In this document: positions 3,066-64,000 of the stretch, in pieces | Position numbering within the stretch: the stretch's first letter is position 1 | How the letters are laid out: every line of letters starts with the position of its first letter | Assembly: GCA_965285935.1 (NCBI GenBank) | Contig: OZ260667.1 | Coordinates: forward strand, 26,536,001 to 26,600,000 | Origin: Ophelia neglecta | Taxonomy: Eukaryota | Length of the DNA stretch: 64,000 bases | Direction: 5' to 3' | Made by a program: the position numbers and the translations under genes | The notes under the pieces: generated by a model | What the model was told of the DNA's origin: nothing | What the model saw: only the letters and a program-made list of their open reading frames with translations | Database searches by the model: none

Positions 3066-3548
3066 TCATAGCGCGGTTATGTTAAGTTCTCTATTATCGT
3101 CCAACGTCTGATTAGCATTACCGAACTGATCCACGGTTTTAGTGTCATAGGTCGTGAGCGTCCTGAACAGTGTTACTCGGATATAAAACATAGTAGACAA
3201 TGAAGCGTACACGATTGCACCGATTAATATTCCTACCATTGACAGAATCAGACCAGTTAAAAAAAAGCAGCGATGTCCACACCTAGAATTCTCATCGTGA
3301 TCTGGGTCACGCCTTTGCCGTATGGCAAGGGAGGCGTATGCGACGGCAAATATACCGACAATGGGCAGACAGAGGATACATTGAAAAATTGCAAGTGCCA
3401 ATGACAAGTAGTATCGTTTGGGAACGTCCCGAGGAGGCGCTTCCGTCAATTTCCTTATAACTTCCGGCGGAAGCGGTTGCAGTTCTTCTGGTGTGGCGCT
3501 TTCGTTTTTATTCTTCGTCAGTTTCGTTCTTACTGCGTGTGTGGTCAT
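3066..3548 (-). CDS. CD225/dispanin (IFITM/PRRT-like) membrane protein, 160 aa, single coding exon
   Basis: Acceptor tttcag|GAAAGAGCCATG (exon starts 3557) puts the start at 3548. Motif PKRYYLSLALAIFQCILCLPIVGIFAVAYASLA followed by a second hydrophobic helix FFLTGLILSMVGILIGAIVYASL matches the CD225 layout. Pro-rich N-terminus; C-tail sequons NQT and NIT. Confidence 0.72.
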   Translation of the reverse strand: MTTHAVRTKLTKNKNESATPEELQPLPPEVIRKLTEAPPRDVPKRYYLSLALAIFQCILCLPIVGIFAVAYASLAIRQRRDPDHDENSRCGHRCFFLTGLILSMVGILIGAIVYASLSTMFYIRVTLFRTLTTYDTKTVDQFGNANQTLDDNRELNITAL

Positions 3549-6500
3549 GGCTCTTTCCTGAAATAGAAACAGGTTGTATAGTCTTATAGGGTAACACCTG
3601 AGACCCAAGCCTTTTTGGCATAATGTTCCTTACACACAAAGTTCGCGAGAGTGGCACGAGCAAGAAATGCTAGTGAACATATTAGGCAAAGTGGAGTCTT
3701 ATATTAACATTACACTAGACGAAATATATTACGGCTAACATAGACTAAGTTCAAATTGTGAAAACAGCCATTATTGCAAGTGAAATACAGTCTCTTTTGC
3801 AGGGATTGAACAATTTCGCATGAATAATTAATAATAACATCAGTTAATTTATAAAAATATCTGATAGGCTGCCGTCTCAATTTACGATGTTTTCCGAAGC
3901 TGCACGCGTGCCAGCGTTAAATTATGACTTGGATGGCTGCAGGGTACATCTCTTGATCTGCCTCTCGATTTCGATTGCTATCTCTCGATCGCGAAGTGGA
4001 ATGGCAATTGGTGGCAAATTAAACAAATACAATTACGATTTAAACAATTGGAAGGTTTTCGGCCCATAGAATTGACGACAATGACAGTATGGACCTTTTG
4101 GTAGCGAAACGTAGAGCCATTGACATATCTCATTAGGAGAGTTGCTCTGTTGTGTGAGAGGGCACACAAATGTTAGCACAACATCCCATGTTATCAAACA
4201 CATGTCTAAAAAACACAGCCTTGTTTATTAGCTATTACCCCTCCATCCGCATCCCGGGTACAGCAAGATAGATGCATGTCGTGTCGTCTGTGCCTAGCGA
4301 GGAGATAATGCCTCCTGCAAGCGCTCAACTGGTGAATAATTGATCAACAATATATGGGTCCCGAAGGAGAACCACGCTCCAGTCACTCCACAATACAAGC
4401 TCTATCCAGGCTGTCAAATTCACATTTTACAACATTTATGAAATACATTATTTAATATACACGCAAAGCGGGACCGACCATAAAAACACATTTAGTGTCA
4501 ATGCTTATAATTTTTTTTTATTGCGTCATTTTCGTTTTCGGCAACGCCCTTAACCTGAATTGTTCGATTTCCTTTTTTAATCAACGAGCCCGTGCCTTTT
4601 TAACAATTAGTTGGTGCAGATAAACTCTGAAAGCATATTCCATTAATTTTATCCAACAAAACCGTATTTTGCGACGGTTGGTTGACTAAAATTGTGTAAC
4701 AGGAACCCCTAAACAATATAATCAAAAGTGCTTGTTCAAATTTTATTTTTACATGTTGGTAAAAACAGTTGGCATTCTTAACCGGAAGTCGCCAGTACCG
4801 CACTTTAGCTGATGTTTATTCCTTATTGGTATCTGAGTCCAACAGACAAGCTTAAGGCCAATAAGGCAGCAGAAGGATCTGGCCTCGAGGTTTGGCTAGT
4901 GCGATTAAGATGCTTGATGGCTGCAGCGTGTTTGCTAGCAGCCAAACAATGCTTTTAGATGCCAGCTTAACTAACAAGCGGTGCAGGGTCACATTTTCAA
5001 ATGAATCGTGTATTGACATCCTTACATGTGATTGGAGAATGTTCCTTTGACTTCGGCCTTAGCCATGATAATCCCATTGGTACTGAGTCTCGTTTTCGGC
5101 GAGCATGAATGCCATTAGACAGCAGTGGGCATGGGCGTGTGATTCAATATGCCAAGCGAGAGCCAGCGTCAAAAGCATAGGCCTATGTAATGTGGGTAAT
5201 GGCGGCTGGACTGCCTGTAAAGATAATCGCAAGTCCGGGATTCTGTAATACATTGAAAGCTCCGTAGAGACAGCTGAAGAAAACCACCGTATTGTACAAC
5301 AAGAGTTGGTCTGATTTTTTGTTTTGTCTTCTTTTTGTCCATCCGTTGTCCCTGTATTACTATATCCAATTTTCCAATCAGACTAATCTTTTCACCCTCA
5401 CCTTGCGACGCATCCTATGTTAGTCCGCAAGGACTGTCATTTTTTGGGCCCGTAAGCTTCACCTTATAGCATTCGAATGATAAATTTCGTATAACAATCA
5501 CTAGTTAGCCAAACTCATTGATTTCAATAATGTATCATTAACGTGAACAATATTCTACCCGTACCGGTGCTGGTGAATCAAAGAAGAATTGGGCCATCAT
5601 TGACTTTTAACACTTGCAAGGCAATGCTTTGCGAGGAGGGCAATGGCTAGTTTAGCCTGCAAAACCAAGAGCTGCATTCAATATGACTCGGCCATATCTC
5701 ACACCCTCGGGACCCTTCCCCGTCCTATAGTTATTGGAATTATCCGCACGAATAAGCCTCAGCTGGTCGGCAAACGAAGAGCAAGGGGGAAGGGAGGGGG
5801 GGGGGGGCTGCTATATAGAGCATATTTGACAGGCCTCGTTGCGTTTTTGCTGTAGAATAATCTCGTAAACGACTCATGAATCCTGAAGGCTGGTTTATTT
5901 TTGCTAGACGAAATAGCCAATCAGCCTGTCGGATGCAAAATAATCACATTTTAGAAAAGATAAGAGAGAATGGTGGTATAACCTGGCGTTACCCTTATGA
6001 AGTGGCATATTTGAGTGAATACCTCGTCTAAAATAGATCAAGTAGTGAGATATTAACAGCAAATTATAGACATCATTCAGCACAAAGGTTATGGGCATTG
6101 CTCTTTATTATACCAAAAGAATAATAATGACCCAAACGGAAAAAAAGAGAGAGTTTGCCGTTATTTATCGTCAAGGCAGCCGCTGATAGATGACTGCGTG
6201 AAAAAGGAAAGGCCATGTCGGCTTTCATGGAGGTGGAACTACAATATGAGTTTTTTGGCGGGCTTAGTGTGTTTCCAAGACATTTATAACCGAGCATGGT
6301 AGTGTATTGTGTTGAGAGAGACAGGAAGAATTGGTTTGCATTGGCTCATTTGTTGTACGAACTGCCAAGCTAGGCCCAACTAAGTAGACTGGTACATAAG
6401 GACGGATCTACAGGGAGGCTCAGTCGGTTTAGGACCCCATTATGGATAGGTGCTGATCCTTTATTGTGGAACCCGCCCCCCCCCCCCTCCCCTTCTTTAG

Positions 6501-19057: not shown

Positions 19058-20281
19058 TGTGTAACACGACACCTTTGCCCACATTTCTACTGTTGTCTGG
19101 TTTTATTGTTGTGAGGTGCCGGCCCTTTTCACCTAAACAGTCTGCCTTCTTACGCAATACAGGAGTAAATTATGCGTAGGTATATCAATATAAAAATTGT
19201 ATAATCAACACATGGAGCATCAATTGTATGGCAAATGATCTGAATCAGTATGTTTTGTCCTGTATGTCAGGATACCTATGACACAAGTACGATACAGTGC
19301 CAACGCAAAGCACATTGCCTTTGGAAACAATCTACACTTCGGTTAGATTATAATAGCTGACGTCCCAGCCTATAATTATACCTGTTGCCTACGCCAGCCA
19401 CATCATATAGTTCCCATAGCAACATGAAGAATCAATAGCCTTTCGTCTACAGTGAGGATAACAAATTGGACGCGCTGTTTAGTTGTAGCGAGATCTGGGG
19501 CGAGGCCCAGCTTTCGGATGCCTACAGGTGAGTGGAGGAGTGTATACATTTTCTTTGACCGATTGTTTTTCGTCATTTTGTGAAGTTACCTGTCTGGGTC
19601 CCAATCACGTGATACATTCGTATTTTGTCTCTTCTCTAACAAATTTTGTATTTTGTAAAAATATTCTTTGCCAAAATGTTTAAATACATATAAGTACTTT
19701 TGCTTATTAAATCTAAGTTGATTTGCCAAGAATCATATAGCCGGATAAGCTAAAATATTATATAACAAAATTTACGTTCCTTAATTCACTTTTGACGACT
19801 TCTTTTTAAGATTGACGTCATATAAATCATCAAACATGTATGTTTTAGTTCTGTCTTGGTTGGCCATAACATTAGCAATGAGATATAATAGCACACAAGG
19901 TGACCATATTTATTGTAAGCTGCACAGGCGGCTAGCTGCAGTGTAATGGTAAACACATGTGTGTTTTCATTGACAGCTGTTTACAAATAATCAATATTAA
20001 TAACTATATCCTACTCCTATAGAGGTTTTCAACACCAATTAGAAATGAACTTTTTGCGATTTTAAAATATGCATTAAATAGCGTTCGATGCATATTTTGG
20101 CTATATATGTCCAATTTTTATTTGTTGTGCGACATCCTGAAGTTTCCATCTTGTTTTAACTCCTTAGTTTCGTCTGGAAATGTTTGTCTTTTGTACATTT
20201 AACTGCCATGGCAACGAATTGAAACGTTATATCGTATTTTGTTTGTTACAGGTTTTTCAAAAGCTAGTAGATAAGAGAAGT

Positions 20282-20959
20282 ATGGCAGACTATGATCAGG
20301 ATAGTTTTGACACCATGGTCAAACTGAACGTGGGCGGCACTTGGCATACTACTACAAGAGGCACACTTACTTCTCAACCATCTGAGGTTTTTCATTCACT
20401 TCTTCAGGAGGGAGAAAAAGGAGCCAAGATTCAAAATGGAGAAAGCGGTTATTATTTTATCGATAGGGACGGATCATTATTTAGACACGTTTTAAATTTC
20501 CTAAGGACAGGAGAACTGAATTTACCGTTTGACTTTAATGAGTATGATCTTTTGCAGTCGGAAGCCAATTTCTTTGGGTTAACCAAATTGGAAAATGCAA
20601 TTATGGTAAAAAAATCGGTTAATATGAAATGTGATCATATTGAAGTGATTGAAGTGGCCCACCCGGAAAAAGTAGGATTGTGTTGTACTCGTTTGGTGCT
20701 CACGGAAAACCTACAAGAAGAGGCGCCATTTTGTGATGTTATCAATCCTGGCGGAAGTGAGCACGAAATGTATGAAGGTCAGCGAGGACGTTTTTGGGTC
20801 CGCACCAATCTCACCCGTGTCGAGTGGGCGGAAAAGCTGCCCCAGTATGGTTGGAACATGAAATACGTTACGTCATTTTGTCGCAAAATACCGGACATAA
20901 CCGGGACGGGAACTGACATTTGTCACATTGTCGAGAGATGGTATAAAGGTATGAAATAA
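20282..20959 (+). CDS. KCTD-family BTB/POZ (T1-type) protein, 225 aa, single coding exon
   Basis: VKLNVGG.WHTTTRGTL, YFIDRDGSLFRHVLNFLRTGEL, EANFFGL are KCTD BTB signatures, followed by a C-terminal domain ending L..YGW..VTSF..VERWYK. Acceptor ttacag| ends at 20251; a candidate upstream non-coding exon donor (cag|gtgagt) lies near 19527. Confidence 0.9.
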   Translation: MADYDQDSFDTMVKLNVGGTWHTTTRGTLTSQPSEVFHSLLQEGEKGAKIQNGESGYYFIDRDGSLFRHVLNFLRTGELNLPFDFNEYDLLQSEANFFGLTKLENAIMVKKSVNMKCDHIEVIEVAHPEKVGLCCTRLVLTENLQEEAPFCDVINPGGSEHEMYEGQRGRFWVRTNLTRVEWAEKLPQYGWNMKYVTSFCRKIPDITGTGTDICHIVERWYKGMK

Positions 20960-37707: not shown

Positions 37708-40700
37708 TCATTGTTGCTCACATCCACGCCTCATCGGCTGACGGACTCCGGCACTCCCAAGTTCTTCAATCTTGACCAATAAGCCGGTGAGTATAGTGAC
37801 ACCTCGCCGTTTGGTCGCCCACTCCAATTGGGAGTTTGGTATCTGAGGGTCCAGCTGAGTTTTGAGTCCTACCGTCTGGTCTCCTACGTCATAAGATCCG
37901 GGCTTTATGCGAACCTGGAACGCTACACGTGCTATATACGCTTTGGACGTTGTACTGTCTTCGTACCTGCAATGGAAAAATATACTGCTGTTTTTCAGCT
38001 TTGGACATGATTATTTTGATTGATTTGCATTGAAAATAAATCGCTCCATTGATCTTAGACCTTGACGCCAATGGTTATATGTTTATATGCGACTGAGCCG
38101 AGCGGGATGCAAGCGCCTGCGAACGTAGGTCACTCTATAGATACCATATATGTAGGTAAAAGAATGATATGCAAAAGAACACAATAAGAGTGCTAAATCG
38201 AAAGAGAATCCAATAGGGTATGCAAGTCAGTCACTACCGTTGGTTGTTGTGGCAGTCTCAGTAGCTTATATGGTAACATAGAACTACTAGGCCGTTCTTT
38301 TGTTATTGGGTGTTTTCCTTTCCAAGGTACGAAATGTGGCATTGATCGTTGGTGAATTTCGATTGTATTTTTCGAAATACTTTAAAGTGCAATTCACAGT
38401 TCAGAATATCCAATATACAATCAGATCTTCATCTTCAAAGAGAAATAAAAGGCGTTGTGCTCTAGTTTGTTTGTCACTGCACGAACTGTGCATGCTGAGA
38501 CGGGATCTGCTTCGGAAAGAGATTTGCTTTTTTTCGATTTATTATTCGATAGTCAAACTTAGAGAGTTACGTCATACTTTTTATGGCCCAAAATGAATAA
38601 TGTATACTGAGAAAGTCCGCCCAGTTAATACGAATGACTTCACTTGCATTCTCGCACAGTGCAAGTGTCACGTCGTTACGTGAATTTTGATGAAGTTGGT
38701 ACTATATCCCGGATCGTGAAATTTCCGTCAACGGTTAGGTCCGTTTCCGGTAAAGTCCGATATTTGAAAGACAAACCATCGCTCGCACACTAAACTATGT
38801 CTATATGTAACAGACGAGATTGATGATTGTAACCATATATATCAAATATGTCGCACTTAGCTGGCCGTGAATAGACATTACATCCTGCGTATCTGATGGA
38901 AGGAGACAAGTAGATTTTGTTGACATCATGTCCGGGTGGAGGTTTCATATCCGGATTGCTTGGATCATAGTGGTTGTCTGGAGGACGTAGTTCGTCGCCC
39001 TCTGGTGGCAAATCACCTGTGTAAACAAGGTTCCTACATCAATGATCGAAACGCGTATTCTTCGCTTACTCGCACACCAGACATCCCACAATAAAATCGG
39101 CGTCCAATTTGCCTGTAACGCTCTTCATGTACGTATAAAACCAATATTTAAGTTTTTGTAATCTAATTTCACAGGTAATAATAACTTTTTTGGGGAACAT
39201 ATTCAAGTAATTATAAAGGTTTCTTATTGTGCCAAAATTATATTAGATGTTCAATGACTTTGTTTAGTAATATACTTCTTTCTGACTAATGTTTCCGATC
39301 CTACAAACGAAAAAATATTTACCACTGACAGTGTTGATGGTTCCAACTGTCGATTAATGTATCTCACTTTAGAATTAACTACTATATTGCCTAACCTGGC
39401 ATTAACAGGTCTCCTGTATCCAGTATACTTTTCACACAATCGTGCCGTGTGCCGTGAAATGCCACGTGCCACATTTTAAACACATCCAGACTATCTGCTT
39501 TCGCGGGAGTCCTGCCAAAGTAAAAGAAAAAAAATAGGGCAGTGCTGATGAAAACTATCTGTTTTATTTATTTTTTTCTTTTATCTATTAATTGGTCTTC
39601 TCCACTTGTCTTACCTGAGACCAAACTTGTACCATCCTATCGGTACCCCGTAGATGGAGGTTGGCACCCCCCGTCTGTAGTACGGCTGGTCTCCACGGCG
39701 GCCATGACAGTTACTGCAGAAACACGTGTCATATGACTGATCAAAGTACTTGTCTGAAATTGATCATAAAAGATAAAACATTACAGTATTAATTTCAAAT
39801 TATGTAGGGAAAAAGCGTTAATCATTTATCAGTATACAAAAGGCCAGTTATACGTCAACAATTAAACTTAATGTCTAATTACCAACCTCCAAGACAAAAT
39901 CACTTATAAGAGAGATTTATAAGCACAAGCCTTGAGCACCGATCCCGATCCACTGCCTCATTTTACATAATTAATATATGTGTAGGTATATTTTATTACC
40001 TGAGAGCCCCAGACAATTCTTTAGCCGCTTACAGACGCCCTGAAAGCTACACTCCTGTTTTCCGCTGATAGCATTCGTTGGAGGAAAAAATTGTTTTGGT
40101 GCAGTGGCTGCAAAAAAAATACAAAGGTACCATATATATCGTTAAACCGCATTATTATATGAAGTTATCTTGCCTACAACTGTCATTTGAGTTGATTGAA
40201 TGAAGAAAAATCACATTTTTGGCTTTTCTTAGTCACTAATAAATGAAATGAGTAAAATAATTGTAATATGAAATAATAAATTACCTCTAGGTGTTCTCGG
40301 TGTCGCAGCGCTCTCTTCAACGGCCTCTTGTAGGGCCTTGGTGAACCACCAAAGAAGATCCTTTCGCTGGCCTTGCTCGTCTAAACAAATTAGCAAATAT
40401 GGTGAAAGCATACATTCTTTTAATGCCTTGTAATGATTCTTTACATTAATTTTATAATGAACACCTGGTCTGAACAGAATACTTTCGTTATCACGCCTGT
40501 CCATTAAAAAAAATCACAGACATTCCCTGCCCACGCGTTCTAAGAGCAACTATAGGTGATCATAATACCTGATTCTTCGTCTGAGTCGCTGCTGTCGTCT
40601 GACTGCCATGCAGTCGCTTTGGCCGTTGATTCGGACTGTTTTTGGCACTTAACTGTTGCTATGTGCAAGAAAATTGAAGTTAACCATAAATGCAGTAAAG

Positions 40701-43700
40701 GCTTTAAGAGATGCACATTTCAAACATCCATGATTTTGTGTGATTCCGAACTATGTTCTTTTTTGTATTACATTTCTCCAACTACTAAGAATTTGTTTAA
40801 ATTTCGCAACATTAACTAATCTGTTGTTGACTTAATTTATTTACCAGCTTGTTGCTGCACTGGGGCACATCGTTCCTGTTTCGTCCGCTCGGCTGATACT
40901 GCAAAAATATATATAAATACAGGGCGAGGTAGCACATTTTAGCGAATTGGTTTAAGATAGGGGAAACAATTTTGAGGAATAATACCTGTATAGTTGCAAT
41001 ATACTGTTAGTTCTGGCTCTATAAGATCTACCAAGATGAAGGGACCACAATGAACGATTTTTAGAGAGATTATTTTTGCACATGATTGAATGATTCTTTT
41101 AGTTTTATTCAAATATGTTTTTTAACATTTAATGAAATTAAGTAAATAGCGAAGAACATCACCAAAAAAACGTTATGGATTGGTGTTTATTGACAATTTT
41201 GAATAGTACCAGGTTAAAATGTAAGGACTTGTGAGTCCTAAAAAAACCTAAAAATTCTACCATGGCCCAGCACAAATAAATGCATCATGGACCCATGCTG
41301 GCATAAAAATAACAAACTCGAACTAATTATTTAATAACTTCAATCAGATACCTGATATAAAATTTGCAAACAACTAACCATTTTCTCTTGTAAATATGCT
41401 TATTTTCATAGCACATATATAGTTTTTGAGCGCGACAATTATTAATAAACCCAAAAAGGGTATTTCAAGACTTGCCTGCAGCTAAGAATGTTTTATCTTT
41501 ATTGTGTATCTTGGATTTCTTATTGGAATTCTGAGAGTAATCTACATGTATGTCACCAACGCACTTTTCATTTCACTTAGATCAGAGTATTTTGTAAACT
41601 TAATTAAAAGGAGAACGTGTAATCCGAGGCCCAAAATTGACCCTTTGGGAGCCCCATATAATTTTGTTTATTAACAAGTCCCCCACCCCCTAGTATACTC
41701 ATACACACAATCGGTCACATATTCATAAATTAAGACCAAATATTTGGTCTGCGGGATGTTTAAACCTGTATTTTTATATTTTCCATTGTCCTTTGGATCT
41801 TACCTTGTTTCCCGGTTACAGGCTTCTCTGTTGTGATTTTACAAATCTCGGACAAGATGCATTGCCAGCTTGCTTGCTGATCAAAATCTATTGTAACATC
41901 TCTCCCGTTAGGGCTGATCGCTGAGATTAACCAGCAAAATATTTATATTTCTTAAGTGCTTGCAGAATATTAGAATGTAAATCATCTAAAATATTTATAT
42001 TGGATTTAAGTAGCAACAAGTAAGTCAATTAACAGTTATCATTCATTACTTGTATATGCACTGTATTCTAGTCGATAAAATTATACTTCTAAATCTAGTA
42101 ACAAACGATAGTAAAAATGTGTTGAAGTTTATCATTAGATCAAATCGATGTTTAGCCATATTTTATTTAAGGTTTCAATTTTATTATATTCAGGTCATGC
42201 TTTAACCTTTTAGTTGTCCTACGCTAGTTTTGGTCACTTTACCCCAGCCGTATTTCGGTTTATCCACTTCCGGTCTGACACGAACTTTGTCTCCCACAAC
42301 AGTTATCTCCTCTGAGGATCAAATAACGCAAATGAACTTAAAACGGTTTTGTGTTAACGGCGAAAGCGTAAGCTGTTGCGAAAGCAACATTGATGACATA
42401 ATAATCTAAAATATCAGTAATTTTATAACCCAACCCTAACCCAGGCATCTCGATTTTGTTTTTGTTATAAATGGGTAAGGGTCAGGTTATTATTGTGTTC
42501 ATATGAGCTCAATTTTAGAGGCCATGTGGCTTTCGCCGAAGCCTTCGCTTTCGCCGTTAACACGAAGCCACTTAAAACCACTTATACAGACAACACATGT
42601 CATCAAAGGGTACAGTTAATATTCGACACGAGAACTAATTTATGCCATTAATCAAGCAAGGGCTAAGGTTTGAGGGTTCGTCGTGTACCTGGTTTTCCCG
42701 CTTGAACGGCGTGACTCCCTGGACAGACGATCCTGGCAAAACTATGTCTGTGGACATTTTTGTTAATGAAACACGTCTGACAGAGATCAAACTGTGAACA
42801 TTCGGCACACTTAAACCTTGACCCATGAAGCGGCAAGTCCTGGCAACCACAGCACCTGACATACAAGATGTATTGTTAAAACAAATATAATATCGATTTT
42901 TCTCAAGATGATTAAATAAACTCGGTCATTTATTAACCACAGTGAACCCACATAAAAAGTGCTATCACAGCTCAATTTAGTCACTTTACGCATTGATGTC
43001 GTGAACAATCTAAAGGTACAGTAAGTTTGTCAACGTTTTTAAGCACAAAAATATTTAACAAAGTGGAACAAACTACTTATTATGCTTTTAAAGCATCTAA
43101 TAACTGTGTGTGTACAATCATGTTATATGATACATTTGCACGTGTGTAGCAGTTGAGAAACTGTGATTCTAATGCATTTTTGACATTATGATAAATAGCA
43201 TTAACTTAACGCTATCTCAACGCATTTCCATGGTTATCTGCTCATAAATCGCGTGTGATTCATTCAAATCGCGTGGTAGAAGGAAGCGACTTTTGTGATT
43301 GGCGCAGCATTTACCAAACGCCGCAAAAGGAGTCTCTCCTGACCACGAAGTGCGAACTGCAGATCGCTTCTATCGGGACAACAAAACTAAATGTACCATG
43401 TTAAGCAATTAAAAATCGTCGGAACATGAACGCGAAATAAGTTTCAATGGTTATTATTCTTCGTTTGGTATTTCTATTTCAGGACAACTCTTGTCACATC
43501 CGGTTATTTAGGCCTATTCCTCGATATCAGTTATTCGTGGTTGAACGGTCCAGACGCTTATCGCAGCCAACTGTTTAGTTGTATTAAAGGTGAAATCGGG
43601 TAATTTCATGCATCGTTTAATAACAGTCGGCTAATTACGCGCAGGAAGTGGTATTGTGTCGAGCGGGAGTAGGTAAAATCCGCTCACAATGTGAATTCAA

Positions 43701-45254
43701 GCGATTTTCCGCATCGTTAACTTCGACAGGCTACTAACTGTGCGTAGGTAAGAATTGTTGATCGTATTGAGATGCAAATGATACAGGCAGTGGAGGGAAT
43801 TATGCAGGGTTGAGAAATAGTCCAAACTATCGCATGACTTGCAGTGGAAGTCGTGTGAACATCGCACTTGTGTTATAACGAATGCCTTGATAGTTCATGT
43901 TTCTAACCTACATTTATTATCCCTGGCAGATGACTACGATACTTAAGCCCAATTCAAATATCCTCGTTGTGCCTGATATAGTGCGTATAACAGTGTTGAC
44001 TCTTAATGTTGATCGAAAGTACTTTTCTCAGTTATAGAAGGCTTTCAACTTATGTGTCTAGGTCATGGATTACATATAATAAAGCACAGCTTGGGCTTTC
44101 AATTTAGCAGGACATGCATGAGCTCTATGTGCAAACTGTAAATTGTTATACTTCATATGATAGGAAACAAAGAATCTATAATTGGAACATTAACATCACG
44201 TAATCAAGAGAGTTTTATTGTCTTGATCAATCGGTTTTAGTGATATCTAAAGTATATGTTTTTGAGAAAACATACATGATTCCTGGATGGGTTTGCACTA
44301 CAGTCTCCAGTTCTGACAACAACCCCTTCCAGGCGTTCTGCTGTGGGTAATCAACAGTGACGGCATCTATAGTAGGATTTAATGCTGGAACGGAAAACTT
44401 AAATTAAAAATAGCTATATAGTCTTGCGTCAGATATATTTCTTGCCATGCCATTGGATATAATCTGGTCAATAGCAAGCTTAATACTACATGGTTATTAT
44501 TTTGCAAAGCTGAATGTAAAGGAAGGAAAATGCAATTTTAAGAATAAAAATATCAGCGAGAGGTTAAGTTACTATGATGAGCATCTCTTTTTTTAAAATC
44601 GACTGAAGTGTTAGACCTGCCTGTGACTATTCCTATACTGCGACGGTTGATATCACCCCAGCCGTATTTTGGTTTATCCACCGTTGATTTGACCTTGACC
44701 CAGTCACCGACCTTGATTTTTTTGACGTCCAGGACGCCGACGATCTCCACGTGCATAAAGGACACCCAGTACTTGTCTCCCTTGTGCTGCCAGTCGACCT
44801 GGACGTTAAGCTCGTGCAAATCACCTTTATCAAGCTGGAAAATGTCCACGAATTTGTTAATGTGTGCCATTAAATTCCGCCACTAACGTGGTAACATTAA
44901 TTTTTACAAGTCTAATATATGTACTTTTATGCCAAAATGTTTATAATAGACGAGCTGGTTGCCCTTCTATGTATTGTAACGGTTAACTCATAAAAATGGT
45001 CATCAGCGAAAAAAGGCAGCGAATGTCTATTGTAATTACAATATCAATTTAGGCCCAGCTAACACGAAATCAGTCCTAGTTAGTTCTAACATAGAGATGC
45101 TCACCCTCATAACTCTCCCACTATCCCCCACTTTGACCTCCTCGTATGTTCGGGAGCACAACACCGTCTGTCCTATCGCGATGTTATCTCGGACGTATAC
45201 GGCGTATATGTCATCGTTCGAGAAATCCGACCTCTTTCTGAACGAAACCGCCAT
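37708..45254 (-). CDS. Paralog A: CPH-SH3like-ZZ-SH3like-linker-NEURL4-type ADP-ribosyltransferase chimera, 14 coding exons, 627 aa
   Basis: Exons 45254-45105, 44834-44621, 44384-44276, 42855-42689, 42311-42207, 41920-41804, 40898-40845, 40658-40569, 40380-40285, 40107-40000, 39753-39615, 39511-39396, 39016-38857, 37966-37708 (1884 nt, open). N-part RKRSDFSNDDIYAVYVRDNI..LHELNVQVDWQHKG..YWV..HVEI..KVGDWVKVK..PKYGWG..HPGIMCCGC is HERC2-like. C-part CFCSNC..YGVPIGWYKFGL..WHVAFHGT..IYLSPSIRYAG..AFQVRIKPGSY..LEWATK..LLVKIE is NEURL4-ART-like. Confidence 0.9.
42345..42569. mobile_element. 225-bp Mutator(MULE)-like MITE in intron 4 of paralog A
   Basis: TIRs ggttttgtgttaacggcgaaagcg / cgctttcgccgttaacacgaagcc; 9-bp TSD acttaaaac at 42336-42344 and 42570-42578; internal taaccc/gggtaa-like subterminal repeats. 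Confidence 0.85.
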
Positions 45255-50562: not shown

Positions 50563-53500
50563 ATGCCTTTTTTGATGAGAAAGGACTTCCCCTCCGACGA
50601 TGCCTATGCCAAGTATGTACGTGACAACATCGAAACTAACATGATGGTACTTTGTGTCAAAACGTACGAGCAAGTTCACCTGGCTGACTATGGAAAAATT
50701 ATAGAGGTGCCTTGTCCTTTCAATATGCCACTATTTTCCGGTTCAATAGGCCTATAGCCAGCTATAGCAAACTTCCCCAATAATGTATCAATGTGGCGCG
50801 GGGAGAAGCAACTTTTATTAAAATGAGTATCGATTCCTTAACAAAGCATATTATGAACACTTTGGGTGTACTGCTATGTTTGACAGTGTACTTTTAATCT
50901 CTGTACAGTTTTTAAACGTTGATACGTTGTTATAGCTCGACCAAGAGGATCCCCATGGCCTCAACGTACACGTTGACTGGCTTGGGAAGAAAGGCACCTA
51001 TTGGGTGAAGTACATTAATGTAGCACTTCTCGGCAAATACCCTTCGGATAATATAGGCGAAGGAGACTGGGTCAGGGTCAAACACAACGTGGTCGAACCA
51101 ACATTCAAATGGGGAAGTGTGAAAAGACGAAGCATTGGAATAGTAACAGGTAGATAGTGTAATGTGAGGGAAGTTTTTATGAGACAATAAAAAAGAAGTC
51201 TGAATAAATGATGCTATTAATATAATTAAGCATATGGTAATCTTTGTAAATTTGATAAATATTATATACCACTTAGCGCCGCTTATTGCATATGTTTTAT
51301 TTTAAGCAAAATCAGACGATAGTTCAGTGATAACAGTTGATTTTCCCGAACAGTCCAATTGGAAGGGGCGTCGCGATGAGATGGAAGAAATCCCGAAATT
51401 ACATCCTGGTGTTATGTAATTATATTGTAATACAAAAATAGAATTGCATATATTAAAAGAAAGGGCTTATTGTGAATTACAAATCTATCACTCACAATGT
51501 AGTCGGCGAATATGGTCAAGTACATTTTCTTTTGGCATAGAAAAATTAAATTTGTTTTTATTGGAAAACTGAAATGTTATGACTGCAAATGTGTATATGT
51601 GTTTGTTTTACATTACAGATGTCGTGGTTGCAAATCTTTTCCATTGAAAGGCTCTCGATACAAATGCTCCGAGTGTGACGATTTTGACTTCTGCCAAGTT
51701 TGCTTTCAGAAGAACACTGGCCACAAACACAAGTTTAAGAGAATCATTTGCCCTGGAGGCACCCCCGTTGATACTGATTCATCAGGCAAGATGATGTTGA
51801 ATTGCTCCGAACAGAAGTGTGGCCCATCCTAGAAATGCATAGTTATGACTATTAGTTTGCTGATTTCTGAGGCAGAAGAACTCTTTTTAACGTTAAGAAC
51901 ATCCGGACGGAAAGGAACACTTGAACAGTCATTTTCTGTTTATATACAGGCATATAAGACAGTTTAAACCGTAGTTTTTAATATTGTAACCATATTTAAT
52001 TCCTTTCTATCTTTTACCATAACATAGGTTCTAACATAAGTGTTGGCGACTATGTCCGCGTGAAAGCGAGTGTCAAAGCTCCCAAATATGGATGGGGAAA
52101 GATTGAAATCAAGGATCGACGCAGTATCGGACGGGTCGAAGGTATTATTTTCAATCGTCATTGGGTGGGGAAAAGAGAGCAATCTTTTTAAAAGCAAGTT
52201 TATATTTATAAAAAAAAACCTTTTTATTGTTCATTGTGGATTTTAATCCCTGATGATACTGATCTGGTAGAAAAAAAATACACATTTTATTTGTTTTTCT
52301 ATGCCAGTTATATGTGCCGATGGCAAGGACCTTCAGGTCAATTTCCGAAAGCAAAAAGGCTGGAATGGTGTTATATCCGAGATGGAGAATGTCGATGTTG
52401 TCCATCTCTCTATCAGGTGAAAAAAAATATTATTATCATTAACCAACTGTGTCAAGCCTTCCCCTAAGTTATCCTAATTAGACTAAATAGGCCAGTGGAA
52501 AAATGCATTCAAACTGTTAATTCACAAGAATCTGTTCAAAGAAAATGTCGTTAAGATGTATGCTACCTACCAACAAATAACCTGTAAAGAAAATTTTACG
52601 ATTGTTGGTCTGACCTTTTATTTTCACCATATTGTGAGATCTGGTACTAACAATTTGATAAGTTAATCTGCTTTCATAACATATTTACCTGTAGATGTGA
52701 TGGGTGTAAGCTTTGCCCGGTAGGTGGAATTCGGTACAAATGTAAGGAATGCGATGACTTTGACTTCTGTCAGGAATGCTTCATAATTATAGACAACCAC
52801 AAACATGACTTCATGAAAATAACAAAGCCCGGGGACAGGCCCCAGATGGCGGGAAAACCTCGTAAGCAGCTAATTTGCATACAAATCCGAATATCTACGT
52901 ATAAACGCCACTGTGCTGTTATAATACTGCATTATATCTAACAGCAGTTACACTTTCTGTTCATAATTTTATGATTGCTTCCAGCAAATGCCATCAAAGT
53001 AGAAATGTCAGATACAGACTCTGATACCGACTCTGATTATTCTACAGTTGGTAATGGATCTGTCTTTTATTTTTTGTCAATATTGCCGTTGCGCTAACTA
53101 ATCGAAATATATTTTATTTTTGTTTCGAGGTATTTCACTGAGAAACTAGTATTATTTTCATATGTCAGAGCTCCTCCTTGCTGCCAAGGCCAATTCCATA
53201 GATCGTGAATGGTGGAAGTTACTCGCAAAAGCCATTGGATCTGATGATTCCGAAGATGAACGTAAGAAAGAAAGTAATGACTCAACATACTTAATCCTTC
53301 CAATGCTATATTTATGAGAAGCTGTATCATTATACATGCTAAAGTTACCCATATGTTTAAATGGAATAGACATGTGACCAATTCAATTAAGCGAATGTCA
53401 AATTCAAATATACTTGTTTGATACGAATTTATACAAATTCGAATTAATTTCTTGTTGCAAATAAGAAAATGAATCCAACATGTGTGTCAAAACTTTCATA

Positions 53501-54350
53501 CATGGGAGCATTCATGCAAAAGGGTTGAATTGTACAACAGTGGCTTAATTAGATAAAGAGCATCGAAGAATCACAATGTTTATCAATTCACCATCAAAAT
53601 TGCTGATTTGCTACAGTGAGTAAGGCTGCCTAAGGGCATATATGACGCTCGTACCATAAGGATTCTATTAGTGATAAAAAAATATCATTTTAATTGAATG
53701 TCAACAGGCAGTGGGATATAAAGCATAAGTGTCCCTTTTGCTCGCATTTATTCTCTAGACGCGACCTATATTCCCATTTAAAGTGTAATGAGAGGCAATT
53801 TAAGGTTGAAACAAACATGATTCTTATTCTTTGATATTAATATAGGTTTTAATTTGCAACGGGGCCAAGTTGCCATCAGAGACAATTTAGCACAACCCCC
53901 TCGGGCCAGTTAAAGGTCAATGATGCCTAAGATTCAATCACTTTTGCTGCATTTCAGAAAAAAAAACAGAATATCCTTAGACATCATATACTATATTGCA
54001 CCCCATTATTCAATATGTACACGATACTTGAATTTCAAACATACCTATAAAGCAGTTCTTATTTGTCAAAACAAACGAATTGACTTTTGCATCATTTTAA
54101 CTTATTAATCACTGGCTACAGAAAAGACTGCTTTGGTGGGCAGCTCTCGCAACGAAGAACCTAAAAACGAAGGAGGGGAAGGAATCTGTGCGTACCAAAG
54201 TCTCTGCAGGCGCTACAAGGATAGTCTCTCTCTTGATGGTATGATATGCACTAAATACAATGATTATTATTATTATTTGTATTATAATTATGTTTTATTT
54301 GTATAATAATAATAATAGTAATAATTATAATATTTGTAATAATAACCATT

Positions 54351-54394
<44 letters not shown>

Positions 54395-56215
54395 AAATAA
54401 ATGATGAATCAAAATTACACCTTCAATGTGATTGTTTTCCAAAAAGAAAACTTATTTGAGGTGGCGGCAGACCAGTGTTTTTGCCAAGGATGCCATGAAA
54501 AACGTGGGGACAATCTCTATTATACCAGAGGAGTACCTCCAAAGAATTATGGTTTGCCTATTGGTTGGTGTAAATTTGGACTGAGGTAGGATTCAGCTTT
54601 AGACTTTACACATCAATCTAGAATGAATACTTCAAATAATGATTTTTATTTTCAACATTAAATGCTAATTTGAAACAATTTAAATAAGGCAGAATGCCCA
54701 AAATAATACAATGATCGAAGTAAACGATATGGTGTTCATACATATTACATTGCATGTTCTGATATGTAGTTCATACGGCAATTGTGACCAACAAAAGTTT
54801 CAATTAAATGGTACAGTCTTTAAATACTTTCGGGCTAATGATGAAACAATGTCATTTATTCATTTTACCTATTGTAAAAACGTTGTCTGCATAAATAGCA
54901 ACTTTGTGGCCACCAGAGTTAAAACTTATTGCCATATCATGATAAATATCTTGGGTGGTGTTGGGGGTGGGGGTGAAATGTTAAATGTTTGGCATGTTTT
55001 GGGTTTACCATTAAAGATATATACTTAACTGAAACCATGAAAAATAAGCTTGGAGGGAAACCCTATCTAATGTACCTTATGCCAGTGACCCTCCTATAGA
55101 ATTGGGTTATCTTTTCTAGAACTCCAGCTAGAGCTCAGAGTTTAAAAGCCTTCCAGCTGTGGCACATGGCATTTCATGGTACAAAACCAGAATGCATCGA
55201 GAAGATCCTTCACACAGGGGACCTCCTAATGCCAGGTATGTCGAAAGTGTCCGGATTAGTGTAGTTGCGACCAATCTTACGAACAAATTATTTAAGAAAC
55301 AAAAGAGAGACAGACAGACAGGCAGACAGACACAGAGGGAAAGAGACCGAGAAAGCTACGCTGAACATATTTTAAAACAAACGTACCAATAATTAATCAC
55401 AAAAGAAGGCGAAAATAACAAATACAAAAAGAAATCGATAAAACATGTGGAAAGACAATTAAATGTAATCCTAAAAATAAAATGGAAAAAGAAAAAGGAA
55501 ATAAATAATATAAAAGTGGACGAAAGACTATACTTTGATGGAATTATATTGTCTTTCTCAAATTAATAGGCGACGAAACGATGGAAGGTGGTCCAATTCG
55601 TCCCCCACCAAACCACTGGGACCCGGAGAACCCTGACATGATGCCCCCTCCTTGTCACGACGTAAAAAAGATATATCTTTCCCCATCGATCAAATATTCC
55701 GGGTGTGGTGTTTATGCCCCTACGAAAAGGTATACATATATATAAAGTTCATTCCTGTTAGGTAATTGTTTTACTGGAAAATAGACTTTTCTTAATGTAC
55801 TATCACTGGTAAATTTTCAGATTACAACTTGTTATAAAATAGCGGTCACAGTATGGAATGACAATAAGAATGGAGGCTGTTTGCCTCGAATGATGGTATT
55901 CAATAAAAAAAAAACCGTGGTATATTATTGGAGTATCAATTATTTTGCTACTAGCTTCGAGGACTTCGATCAACTTCTAAGACGTACGACGCTCGTGTAG
56001 TCTTGCAAGTCCGCATCAAACCAGATGCATACCAAGTAGGCCCAGAAACAATTGGTGCCACATCCGAAATGGATCCCAAATTTCCTAACTCGGAGCTCGA
56101 GTGGTCAACCAAAGTCCGAGGAGGAATAATTCTCACTGGCCTCCTAGTCAAGGTCGAGGGCTTTTCCAGTATTAAGGGAGTCACACACCGACATCCGAGA
56201 CTTCCCCAGGACTGA
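50563..56215 (+). CDS. Paralog B: CPH-SH3like-ZZ-SH3like-ZZ-linker-NEURL4-type ART chimera; apparent frameshift in last exon (586 aa as read, about 657 aa if corrected)
   Basis: Exons 50563-50706, 50936-51149, 51307-51415, 51619-51785, 52028-52141, 52308-52416, 52695-52861, 52985-53050, 53169-53261, 54122-54238, 54447-54585, 55120-55235, 55570-55729, 55955-56215. Exon sizes 214/109/167/139/116/160 equal those of paralog A. The phase-2 splice into the last exon meets TAG at 55998-56000, while the conserved QVRIKP..ELEW..LLVKVE continues in another frame. Confidence 0.85.
54352..54392. repeat. (TA)n microsatellite in an intron of paralog B
   Basis: About 20 TA units, read directly. Confidence 0.9.
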
Positions 56216-62420: not shown

Positions 62421-64000
62421 ATGGCGTCCAGTATGACGAGGTCAGACGTTTCCTCTGATGAGGTCTACGCCAACTACGTCCGTTACAACATCAAAACTGA
62501 TATGCTGGTCGTATGTGTAAGACGTTTCAAGATTATTGAAGAGGCTGACTATGGCAAAATAATTGAGGTATGAAAATATGTTTCTCTTCTCACTGTCATT
62601 CCTGTTTTGTCGTAAAAATGTTCCAATATCGGAAGGAGTTTACACCAACCAGATATATCAATAAAGCTTGACAAATCCTACATTTCAACCTTGGTAACAA
62701 CAGTCAACAGGATCATTTACTTCTAATTTGGAGGAGTGGGGGTGGGGGGTAGTAAAATACCTACTCAGTTAAGATTGCCTGCTATACGTTAGACCACTTT
62801 TATATTGGTTATTCCCAAAGATCAACGAAGAAGACCTGCGGGGCCTCACCGTCCTGGTGGATTGGATTGGGGTGAAAGTTCCCTTCTGGGTTAAGTACGT
62901 AAACGTGGCACCGCTCGGGTTCTTCCCCTCAGAGAAGATAGGTGTGGGAGACTGGGTACGCGTGAAACGCAACGTCGTGGAGCCAACATACAAGTGGGGA
63001 AATGTGAACAGACAGAGCATTGGGATAGTTACAGGTACATGTTTAGTGTATTCCACTCGTGATAAAGTCTGCACTTCAAGATTGAAGTAACCATGATATA
63101 AAGCTATTATATAAATTAAAGGTGTTCCTATTCATTCAGAATTGTCAGTGCTGTCCCTTTAGCCATTGTATGTGAGAGATTTATTATTCAGCTAAGGCAG
63201 ACGATGGGTCTCTGATAACAGTGAATTTCCAAGAGGACTCCACGTGGAAGGGCCGGCGCGACGAAATGGAGTCAATTCCGTCTTTGCATCCCTGTGTGAC
63301 GTAAGCTTTTTACAAATATAAAAATAATTACAACTTCTTCACCTTCATGCCTTAAATACACTGATTAGTTAATCTTCAGGGCGGCGCAGGCCCATTAAAA
63401 AGAGAAATTAACCTGGAAATTCATCGGAAAGAAAATGTACTAAAAGATTTGTTTCGGCGAGGTAAATGAGGACGTACACGTATATTTTTTTGCTTCATGT
63501 TAAATAATTAAAACTAGTATACCACTTATTTGTTATAAGCAAATCAAAATATCGTCATCGTTACCGGCATCTCTTGGAGTGTATACATTGTAAAATGTCC
63601 GGAGATATTGTTAGTAAAAATGTGAAATTATTGTAGTAATCTACGCAAGCATGTGAAATCTACTACATTGTATTTATGCCTTCAAGTGTATGCCTTTAAA
63701 ACGCATACAGTTGTGTTTGGTGAATGTGATCATTTGATAGAGTTCTAGTGCAATGCTAATTTCTTGGTGCTTTATAATATTGATGATATCTCTTTATTCA
63801 GTGAGGCTGGTATGTGATTTGTACATATCTTTGAATATTGGTGTACACATAAGTTTCACATTAACCAATATATTGCCAAAACTTAAAAGGAAATTAAAAC
63901 TATATTTTACCAGTGGTAGGTTCAAGATGTATCACATTTGACCGTTGCAGGTGTGACGGCTGTAAATCTGCTCCACTTAAAGGATCGCGATTCACGTGCT
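62421..64000 (+). CDS. Paralog C (truncated by window end): CPH-SH3like-start of ZZ
   Basis: Exons 62421-62567, 62821-63034, 63192-63300, 63951->64000, with the same phases and the same 214/109 sizes as A and B. Most similar to B ([26 protein letters not shown]). No ART exon is visible inside the window. Confidence 0.85.

Follow-up and report, generated by a model that had tools for sequence, protein, structure and literature searches.

A probable fusion of a HERC2-derived CPH-SH3-ZZ block with a NEURL4-type ADP-ribosyltransferase in Ophelia neglecta

The window analysed here is a stretch of 64,000 nt from Ophelia neglecta contig OZ260667.1, to which coordinates refer unless stated otherwise (C2, C7, C9 and C12 are other places in the same genome). 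On its minus strand, between positions 37708 and 45254, it carries a gene that is probably a conserved fusion, made by exon shuffling, of a block of the E3 ligase HERC2 with an ADP-ribosyltransferase (ART) domain of the NEURL4 type. The gene, hereafter the window gene or A, appears to be a single functional protein-coding gene for a product of about 580-627 aa. Four exons of the genome's own HERC2, coding for the CPH, SH3-like and ZZ domains, were on this reading copied at the DNA level, the SH3-ZZ unit was duplicated within the copied block, and the block was joined via phase-1 introns and the short linker L1 to a five-exon ART cassette made up of the linker exon L2 and four further exons. 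The protein is predicted to be an intracellular ADP-ribosyltransferase with a complete H-Y-E site, in which the HERC2-derived block would choose the partner or substrate and the ART would modify the protein so bound.

The exon model was derived from stop-free segments, GT or GC donors, AG acceptors and frame-keeping phases. Enumeration of splice sites and phases with scripted joining gave 14 predicted exons (1884 nt) coding for 627 aa with a single terminal stop, which reproduces exactly the open frame claimed in the original prediction, an earlier note made on this DNA from the sequence alone. In the list below the exons are compared with two paralogs in the same cluster (B and C), with an ortholog from a second species and with the genome's own HERC2, all of which are described further on.

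Exon 1: 45105-45254, minus strand, start ATG (45254-45252) and N-terminal half of CPH; Pfam Cul7 match with an E-value of 3e-13, profile positions 1-47.
Exon 2: 44621-44834, minus strand, C-terminal half of CPH and first half of SH3-like domain a; GC donor; Cul7 match with 9e-13, profile positions 41-76.
Exon 3: 44276-44384, minus strand, second half of SH3-like domain a; ends with HPGI(M), the first ZZ residues, and is colinear with the HERC2 exon ending in STHPGVT.
Exon 4: 42689-42855, minus strand, ZZ finger; Pfam ZZ match with 6e-8; its length of 167 nt is shared by B, C, the ortholog and HERC2.
Exon 5: 42207-42311, minus strand, first half of SH3-like domain b; SH3_15 match with 0.075; matched in B, C and HERC2.
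Exon 6: 41804-41920, minus strand, second half of SH3-like domain b; donor AAG/GTAAGA; the stretch AISPNGRDVT.DF is 53% identical to HERC2.
Optional phase 1-1 exon: 40845-40898, minus strand, splice-compatible; unsupported, with no counterpart in B, C or the ortholog.
Optional phase 1-1 exon: 40569-40658, minus strand, a polar and then acidic stretch; splice-compatible, weakly supported.
Linker exon L1: 40285-40380, minus strand, DLLWW..KAL; conserved in B, C and the ortholog.
Linker exon L2: 40000-40107, minus strand, C-x5-C-K-R motif, extending the ART cassette N-terminally; conserved in B, C and the ortholog.
ART exon 1: 39615-39753, minus strand, invariant C-x-C-x2-C-H cluster and RGD..GW block, linked to the family by tblastn; C17, C19 and C22 are kept.
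ART exon 2: 39396-39511, minus strand, WHVAFHGT with the catalytic His motif.
ART exon 3: 38857-39016, minus strand, YLSPSIRYAG with the Tyr of H-Y-E.
ART exon 4: 37708-37966, minus strand, QLEW with the catalytic Glu (E199 kept) and the stop codon (37710-37708).

The 13 introns are GT-AG save the one after exon 2, which has a GC donor (44619-44620, after 44621). The donor of exon 1 (AGG/GTGAGC) is in phase 0, and the start ATG is equally placed in both paralogs and in the ortholog. Since the introns flanking them are all phase 1, the exons at 40898-40845 and 40658-40569 can each be omitted, and without both of them the 12-exon frame is equally open and codes for 579 aa; a phase 1-1 candidate resembling the second of these exons in composition occurs at the equivalent place in the ortholog.

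The N-terminal half is, as far as its exon structure and similarity indicate, an exon-level copy of this genome's own HERC2. Pfam scans were made exon by exon on the ten main exon-bearing segments, with the linker exons outside the scan. Of the three domains expected from the original prediction, CPH and ZZ were found, both Cul7 matches being over the cut-off, while SH3_15 stayed below it (0.014 in exon 2 and the value listed for exon 5), as the domain is split across exons. HERC2 entries are the top solved relatives in the PDB sequence search, exon 2 matching 9l8y with 7e-20 in an alignment that extends through the first half of SH3-like domain a, and exon 4 matching the ZZ entries 6ww3 and 6ww4 with 1e-12, in keeping with the proposed colinearity with the CPH-SH3-ZZ part of HERC2. 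The proposed lack of HECT, RCC1, DOC and NHR domains is supported too, none of them having a Pfam match on the ten segments scanned.

The CPH profile, run over the whole genome, finds only four loci, namely the three clustered copies at the window and one at C7:56.22 Mb. The latter is followed 29 kb downstream on the same strand by HECT exons (C7:56.191 Mb), and C7:56.19-56.22 Mb is therefore taken to be the genuine HERC2. The CPH, SH3 and ZZ exons there stop where their counterparts in the window gene stop (…KVIKV/, …VVTG/, …HPGVT/, …AGKPG/) with an identity of 45-58%, which argues for a DNA-level copy of four HERC2 exons. The possibility that the window gene is part of a larger HERC2-like gene was considered separately and ruled out, the ATG being conserved at the start of CPH in all the copies; there is an in-frame stop directly upstream in C, and HERC2-type exons are absent from the window flanks.

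The C-terminal half was recognised by protein comparison. A phmmer search of 1.8 billion representatives with the last ART exon gave 392 proteins, the best with 2e-26. The long matches come from amphioxus, hemichordates, a brachiopod and a bivalve, many of them being named "neuralized-like protein 4"; a later region search added corals, an annelid and a priapulid. These long phmmer matches end in this ART and carry upstream of it Neuralized repeats, SPRY, ARM, LRR, ZU5, CCCH fingers, ankyrin repeats, a thioredoxin-kinase or a "conflict-system" GT4 glycosyltransferase. The four ART exons of the window gene are colinear with residues 785-994, the last 210, of the Lingula "neuralized-like protein 4" (P0004). 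In an alignment of 21 family sequences the window protein keeps 19 of the 19 invariant columns, and HGT, YLSPS and QLEW make up an intact H-Y-E.

Pfam gave no family match on the four ART exons, PARP included, at E-values up to 1, so the identity of the domain rests on the phmmer matches and on fold comparison. For a family member with 53% identity (P0018:590-807), the AlphaFold model, with a predicted local distance difference test score (pLDDT) of 84.8, matches PARP ART domains only (Foldseek E-value 2e-5, probability 1.0), and VIA-align, over about 135 residues, gives Z scores of 10.8 (PARP16) and 10.4 (PARP10). The earlier description of the C-half as a NEURL4-type, PARP-like ART is upheld by this homology, the H-Y-E motif and the fold of the relative. 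NEURL4-type ARTs are classed as "PARP-like" and not as members of the PARP family (PMC10450202), and in human NEURL4 both an HGS mutant and an ELEW-to-ALAA mutant are inactive (PMC8932523). In many family members weak matches to linker L2 lie, always in a consistent position, directly ahead of the ART, and L2 is for that reason counted with the cassette. L1 has no match in other ART family members and was found in this gene group only.

The cluster contains two further genes of the same kind:

Paralog B: 50563-56170, plus strand, head-to-head with the window gene; CPH-SH3-ZZ-SH3-ZZ-linker-ART, open for 12 exons.
Paralog C: 62421-64000, continuing to about 68754 of an extended window (L001), plus strand; 13 exons, 661 aa, fully open.

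Both are like the window gene in the order, sizes and phases of their exons and contain the SH3-ZZ unit twice. The 167-nt ZZ2 exon (phase 2 to 1) has been lost from the window gene, in which exon 6 has 117 nt as against 109 nt in B and C; this 8-nt shift of the donor brings back phase 1 at the junction with L1, so that the frame continues into the ART half. The frame of paralog C stays open through all 13 exons although the synonymous sites are saturated relative to the window gene, so that non-synonymous divergence (dN) alone was obtainable for this pair. The last exon of paralog B, which carries the catalytic Glu, changes frame after FED (at about 55955-55985), which likely makes B either a pseudogene or the site of an assembly error. 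Paralog B also has an additional ART-like stretch at about 54935-55060, in the intron before its ART exon 2.

A search with the exon 2 peptide gave a single protein with 75% identity, encoded on an ENA contig of 32 kb (sample ERZ25069296) that also holds the best short match of the ART exon. The ortholog reconstructed on the plus strand of this contig has 12 exons, all with GT-AG introns, and codes for 593 aa within about 4 kb, with the same phases, L1, L2, a single ZZ and the HGT, YLSPS and QLEW motifs. Its identity to the window protein is 65% overall, namely 65% in the N-half, 51% in the linker and 73% in the ART; dN amounts to 0.19-0.44, synonymous sites being at or close to saturation, and the ratio of dN to synonymous divergence (dN/dS) in the N-half is about 0.10. 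With introns of 100-350 bp the ortholog leaves no room for two genes. Within O. neglecta, the DNA contigs show six of six indels in introns and exonic single-nucleotide polymorphisms in a ratio of four synonymous to one non-synonymous, small numbers in both cases.

A two-ZZ copy of the B/C type lies head-to-head with the ortholog, as in the window, so both types are kept in this arrangement in the second species. Judging from these copies, the genes form an old cluster of two types, the A type having one ZZ with a degenerate acidic pocket and the B/C type two ZZ fingers. At the edge of the ENA locus (L018, 332-478, minus strand) there is a third CPH first exon, which gives at least three cluster members there too.

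The ART cassette has a different history from the HERC2 block. Its last exon occurs in at least 150 scored copies (223 candidates) in the 762-Mb genome, most of them in tandem arrays at C12:62.5-64.4 Mb and C2:4.0-4.7 Mb with a spacing of about 10-15 kb and the others scattered. The copies sampled share the four-exon structure, and several (C12:59.4, C12:62.8, C2:8.3 and C7:100.9 Mb) have ankyrin-repeat heads matching P0078. The true NEURL4 lies at C2:25.654-25.673 Mb, where many NHR matches (an array at 25.654-25.669 Mb) are followed by an ART; full-length HERC2 and NEURL4 are thus present elsewhere in the genome (C7:56.19-56.22 Mb and C2:25.65-25.67 Mb), as had been expected.

In the maximum likelihood tree of ART domains, A, B and C stand with the amplified copies in the starred clade (98/98), whereas NEURL4 proper has an NHR protein of a bivalve as its sister (100/99), and a constraint placing A, B and C with NEURL4 proper is marginally rejected (p-AU, the p value of the approximately unbiased test, 0.0475). 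The tree therefore points to the enzyme half being a cassette of a lineage-specific radiation and not a piece of HERC2's partner, contrary to the earlier proposal that it was taken from that partner. Fused to more than ten unrelated heads, the cassette appears to be a promiscuous module. The test does not reject a common group of A, B and C (p-AU 0.33), and a single fusion event is likely for the three. A single-copy ART gene at C9:30714500-30724499 groups with B and C in this tree (80/84); upstream of the ART it has a weak match to the central part of a Lingula NHR protein, and among genes without a HERC2 head it may be the one closest to the fusion genes.

Several observations weigh against the exon-shuffling explanation. 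Two of the 14 exons, 40898-40845 and 40658-40569, are unproven. One run search for transcripts gave three runs, from one sample and all DNA-like, whose contigs span the introns and contain no exon joints; with no RNA run at the locus, the one-gene case rests on comparison. The fold comparison was made on the 53%-identical relative and the Pfam work on single exons. The frameshift in the catalytic exon of B means that decay does occur in the cluster, the ART tree neither rejects nor demonstrates the monophyly of A, B and C, and enzyme activity, targets and any conflict or immune role are predictions. The GC donor of exon 2 belongs here as well: the same phase-1 site is GT in both paralogs and in the ortholog, and three DNA contig sets agree with the window sequence there, with no difference listed. 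GC donors are also found at other conserved junctions, namely those of the ZZ1 exon of B (51786-51787), the ZZ1 exon of C (L001 extended-window 3118-3119) and ART exon 1 of C (L001 extended-window 6256-6257), which suggests that they may be well tolerated in this lineage, and the donor of exon 2 is accordingly read as that of a used GC-AG intron and not as a lesion.

What the head might bind can be judged from the ZZ pocket. The ZZ finger of human HERC2 binds the free N-terminus of histone H3 or an N-terminal Arg through Asp2709, Asp2728 and Asp2730, and binding is abolished by D2709A or D2730A (PMC9001736). In the alignment to 6ww3 these three positions read Cys, Gln and Asp for the ZZ of the window gene, and for that of the ortholog they read Cys, Glu and Asp; the Cys at Asp2709, being common to both, is considered an old, maintained change. 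In paralogs B and C all three aspartates are present in ZZ2 only, ZZ1 having Arg at Asp2709 in B and Asn at Asp2728 in C, and in the B/C-type copy on the ENA contig both fingers have all three. Going by these pocket residues, recognition of free N-termini seems plausible for the B/C type and doubtful for the window gene, for whose ZZ finger the original prediction had suggested the reading of N-termini such as that of H3.

This bears on the broader proposal made in that prediction, according to which the HERC2 reader was rewired onto the ART of its partner NEURL4 so that HERC2 clients, such as p53-family proteins and free or neo-N-termini like that of H3, would be ADP-ribosylated instead of ubiquitinated. 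In favour of such a rewiring, the architecture is real and conserved, the N-half looks like an exon-level HERC2 copy, the ART is of the NEURL4 type with H-Y-E, a HERC2-NEURL4-p53 network has been published (PMC5617467, PMC8932523), and ZZ2 of the B/C type has the intact Asp/Asp/Asp pocket. It is nevertheless a minority reading and an unlikely one, because the ART groups with the amplified ankyrin-ART clade and not with true NEURL4, because a cassette carried by so many unrelated heads may have met a piece of HERC2 once by chance, because a residue essential for H3 and N-terminal Arg binding is replaced by Cys in both the gene and the ortholog, and because NEURL4 binds p53 in human cells via NHR3 and NHR4, both of which are missing here. 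HERC2 and NEURL4 are physical partners in human cells, and the fusion could be read as a "Rosetta stone" indicating that the HERC2 block and the NEURL4-type ART act on the same clients, which we likewise hold to be improbable. If it were true, the HERC2-NEURL4 complex would be a combined ubiquitin and ADP-ribose writer and both fused gene types stand-alone, differently aimed versions of it.

It is highly improbable that the window gene is a duplicate in decay, a pseudogene without function or expression that turnover in the cluster of ART and HERC2 fragments has left behind. Its GC donor at exon 2, the loss of the ZZ2 exon together with the degenerate ZZ pocket and the frameshift in the neighbouring paralog B would all fit such decay, but the frame of 579 or 627 aa is intact with all 19 invariant ART residues, the comparison with the ortholog gives the dN and N-half dN/dS values stated above, the Cys at Asp2709 is shared with the ortholog and hence old and maintained, and GC donors occur at conserved sites elsewhere in the family. 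Least probable of all is that two adjacent genes, one for a CPH-SH3-ZZ protein and one for an ART protein, only seem to be joined by spliceable frames: the locus is known from DNA-like contigs only and exon 6 and L1 are separated by about 1.4 kb holding just the unproven cassette exons, but the equivalent gap in the ortholog is about 330 bp in a gene of some 4 kb, three paralogs and two species agree in exon order, phases and linker exons, no Met occurs between residues 158 and 415 of the 12-exon model and thus no in-frame ATG after residue 158 upstream of the ART, and the donor shift after the loss of ZZ2 keeps the frame.

The exon-shuffled fusion differs from each of the systems it resembles. 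With NEURL4 and the invertebrate "neuralized-like protein 4" it shares a homologous domain of about 210 aa at the very C-terminus with C-x-C-x2-C-H, HG[ST] (HGT here, HGS in human NEURL4), [YL]LS and LEW, and with this genome's NEURL4 the four-exon ART structure. It differs in its CPH-SH3-ZZ N-terminus, in the lack of NHR repeats on the exons scanned, and in having Tyr at the second catalytic position, where human NEURL4 has Leu according to the published table of H-Y-E motifs (PMC7955679); nor is it an ortholog of NEURL4 by the tree. The central block of HERC2 (human residues about 2550-2760; 9l8y, 6ww3, 6ww4) has the same domain order, and the intron positions match those of the genome's own HERC2, whereas the RLD, DOC and HECT domains and the solenoid body are absent from the window gene, the SH3(-ZZ) unit is duplicated and Cys and Gln stand in for Asp2709 and Asp2728.

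Tankyrase and other PARPs likewise have a protein-binding head followed by a C-terminal H-Y-E ART, and the model of the relative gives Z scores of 9.4-10.8 to PARP16, 10, 12, 14, 15 and 1; on the other side, identity to PARPs is 10-14% and there is no Pfam PARP match on the ART exons and no PARP regulatory or WWE domain. The ankyrin-ART arrays of the same genome (C12, C2) are the closest ART relatives, with 65-68% identity, a place in the same starred clade and the same exon structure, but they have ankyrin heads and form large tandem arrays, unlike the three local copies of the HERC2-headed form.

Neither Cul7 nor ZZ was found in any of the 29 long and mid-sized phmmer matches scanned with Pfam or in the 26 matches of the region search, both searches being limited by word or length, and the literature, the founding papers of the ART family aside, yielded no CPH-SH3-ZZ-ART architecture. 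The earlier remark that this architecture is not known from described proteins thus stands within this limited census of annotated matches. The gene is best described as a member of the NEURL4-type ART family with a new domain architecture, arisen by exon shuffling from HERC2; an automatic pipeline would probably label it "HERC2-like" or "neuralized-like protein 4" and thereby conceal this architecture.

NEURL4-type ARTs are among the least understood ADP-ribosyltransferases, the targeting of their substrates included. The gene combines a fully equipped catalytic domain with a head whose human counterpart has solved structures and mapped ligands. Purifying selection maintains it in at least two species, and it exists naturally in two versions, distinguished by the ZZ pocket. 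It may thereby offer a compact system of about 600 aa for studying the targeting of NEURL4-type ARTs and the clients common to the HERC2 block and ADP-ribosylation, as well as an exon-level example of phase-1 shuffling in which an amplified enzyme cassette received the recognition block of a giant E3 ligase. As for its function, a role in stress, immune or genome-conflict signalling in preference to core housekeeping can be put forward tentatively, on account of the company of amplified, variable-headed ART genes.

A few other features were observed at the two loci. Intron 4 of the window gene contains a repeat at 42335-42732 with a summed contig depth of about 8,000-32,000, compared to about 10-35 elsewhere, and contigs break at its edges, which indicates a very high copy number. 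On the ENA contig, several long open reading frames (ORFs) lie beside the orthologous pair (L018, 14521-17942, minus strand), one of them with a weak match to a phage-integrase SAM-like domain, and may represent a tyrosine-recombinase transposon of the DIRS or Crypton type. The window also has two long uninterrupted ORFs unrelated to the fusion gene, at 20180-20959 on the plus strand and 3066-3608 on the minus strand, one containing a KCTD-type BTB_2 domain (1.3e-18) and the other being weakly similar to CD225/interferon-induced transmembrane proteins (1.2e-4, below the cut-off).

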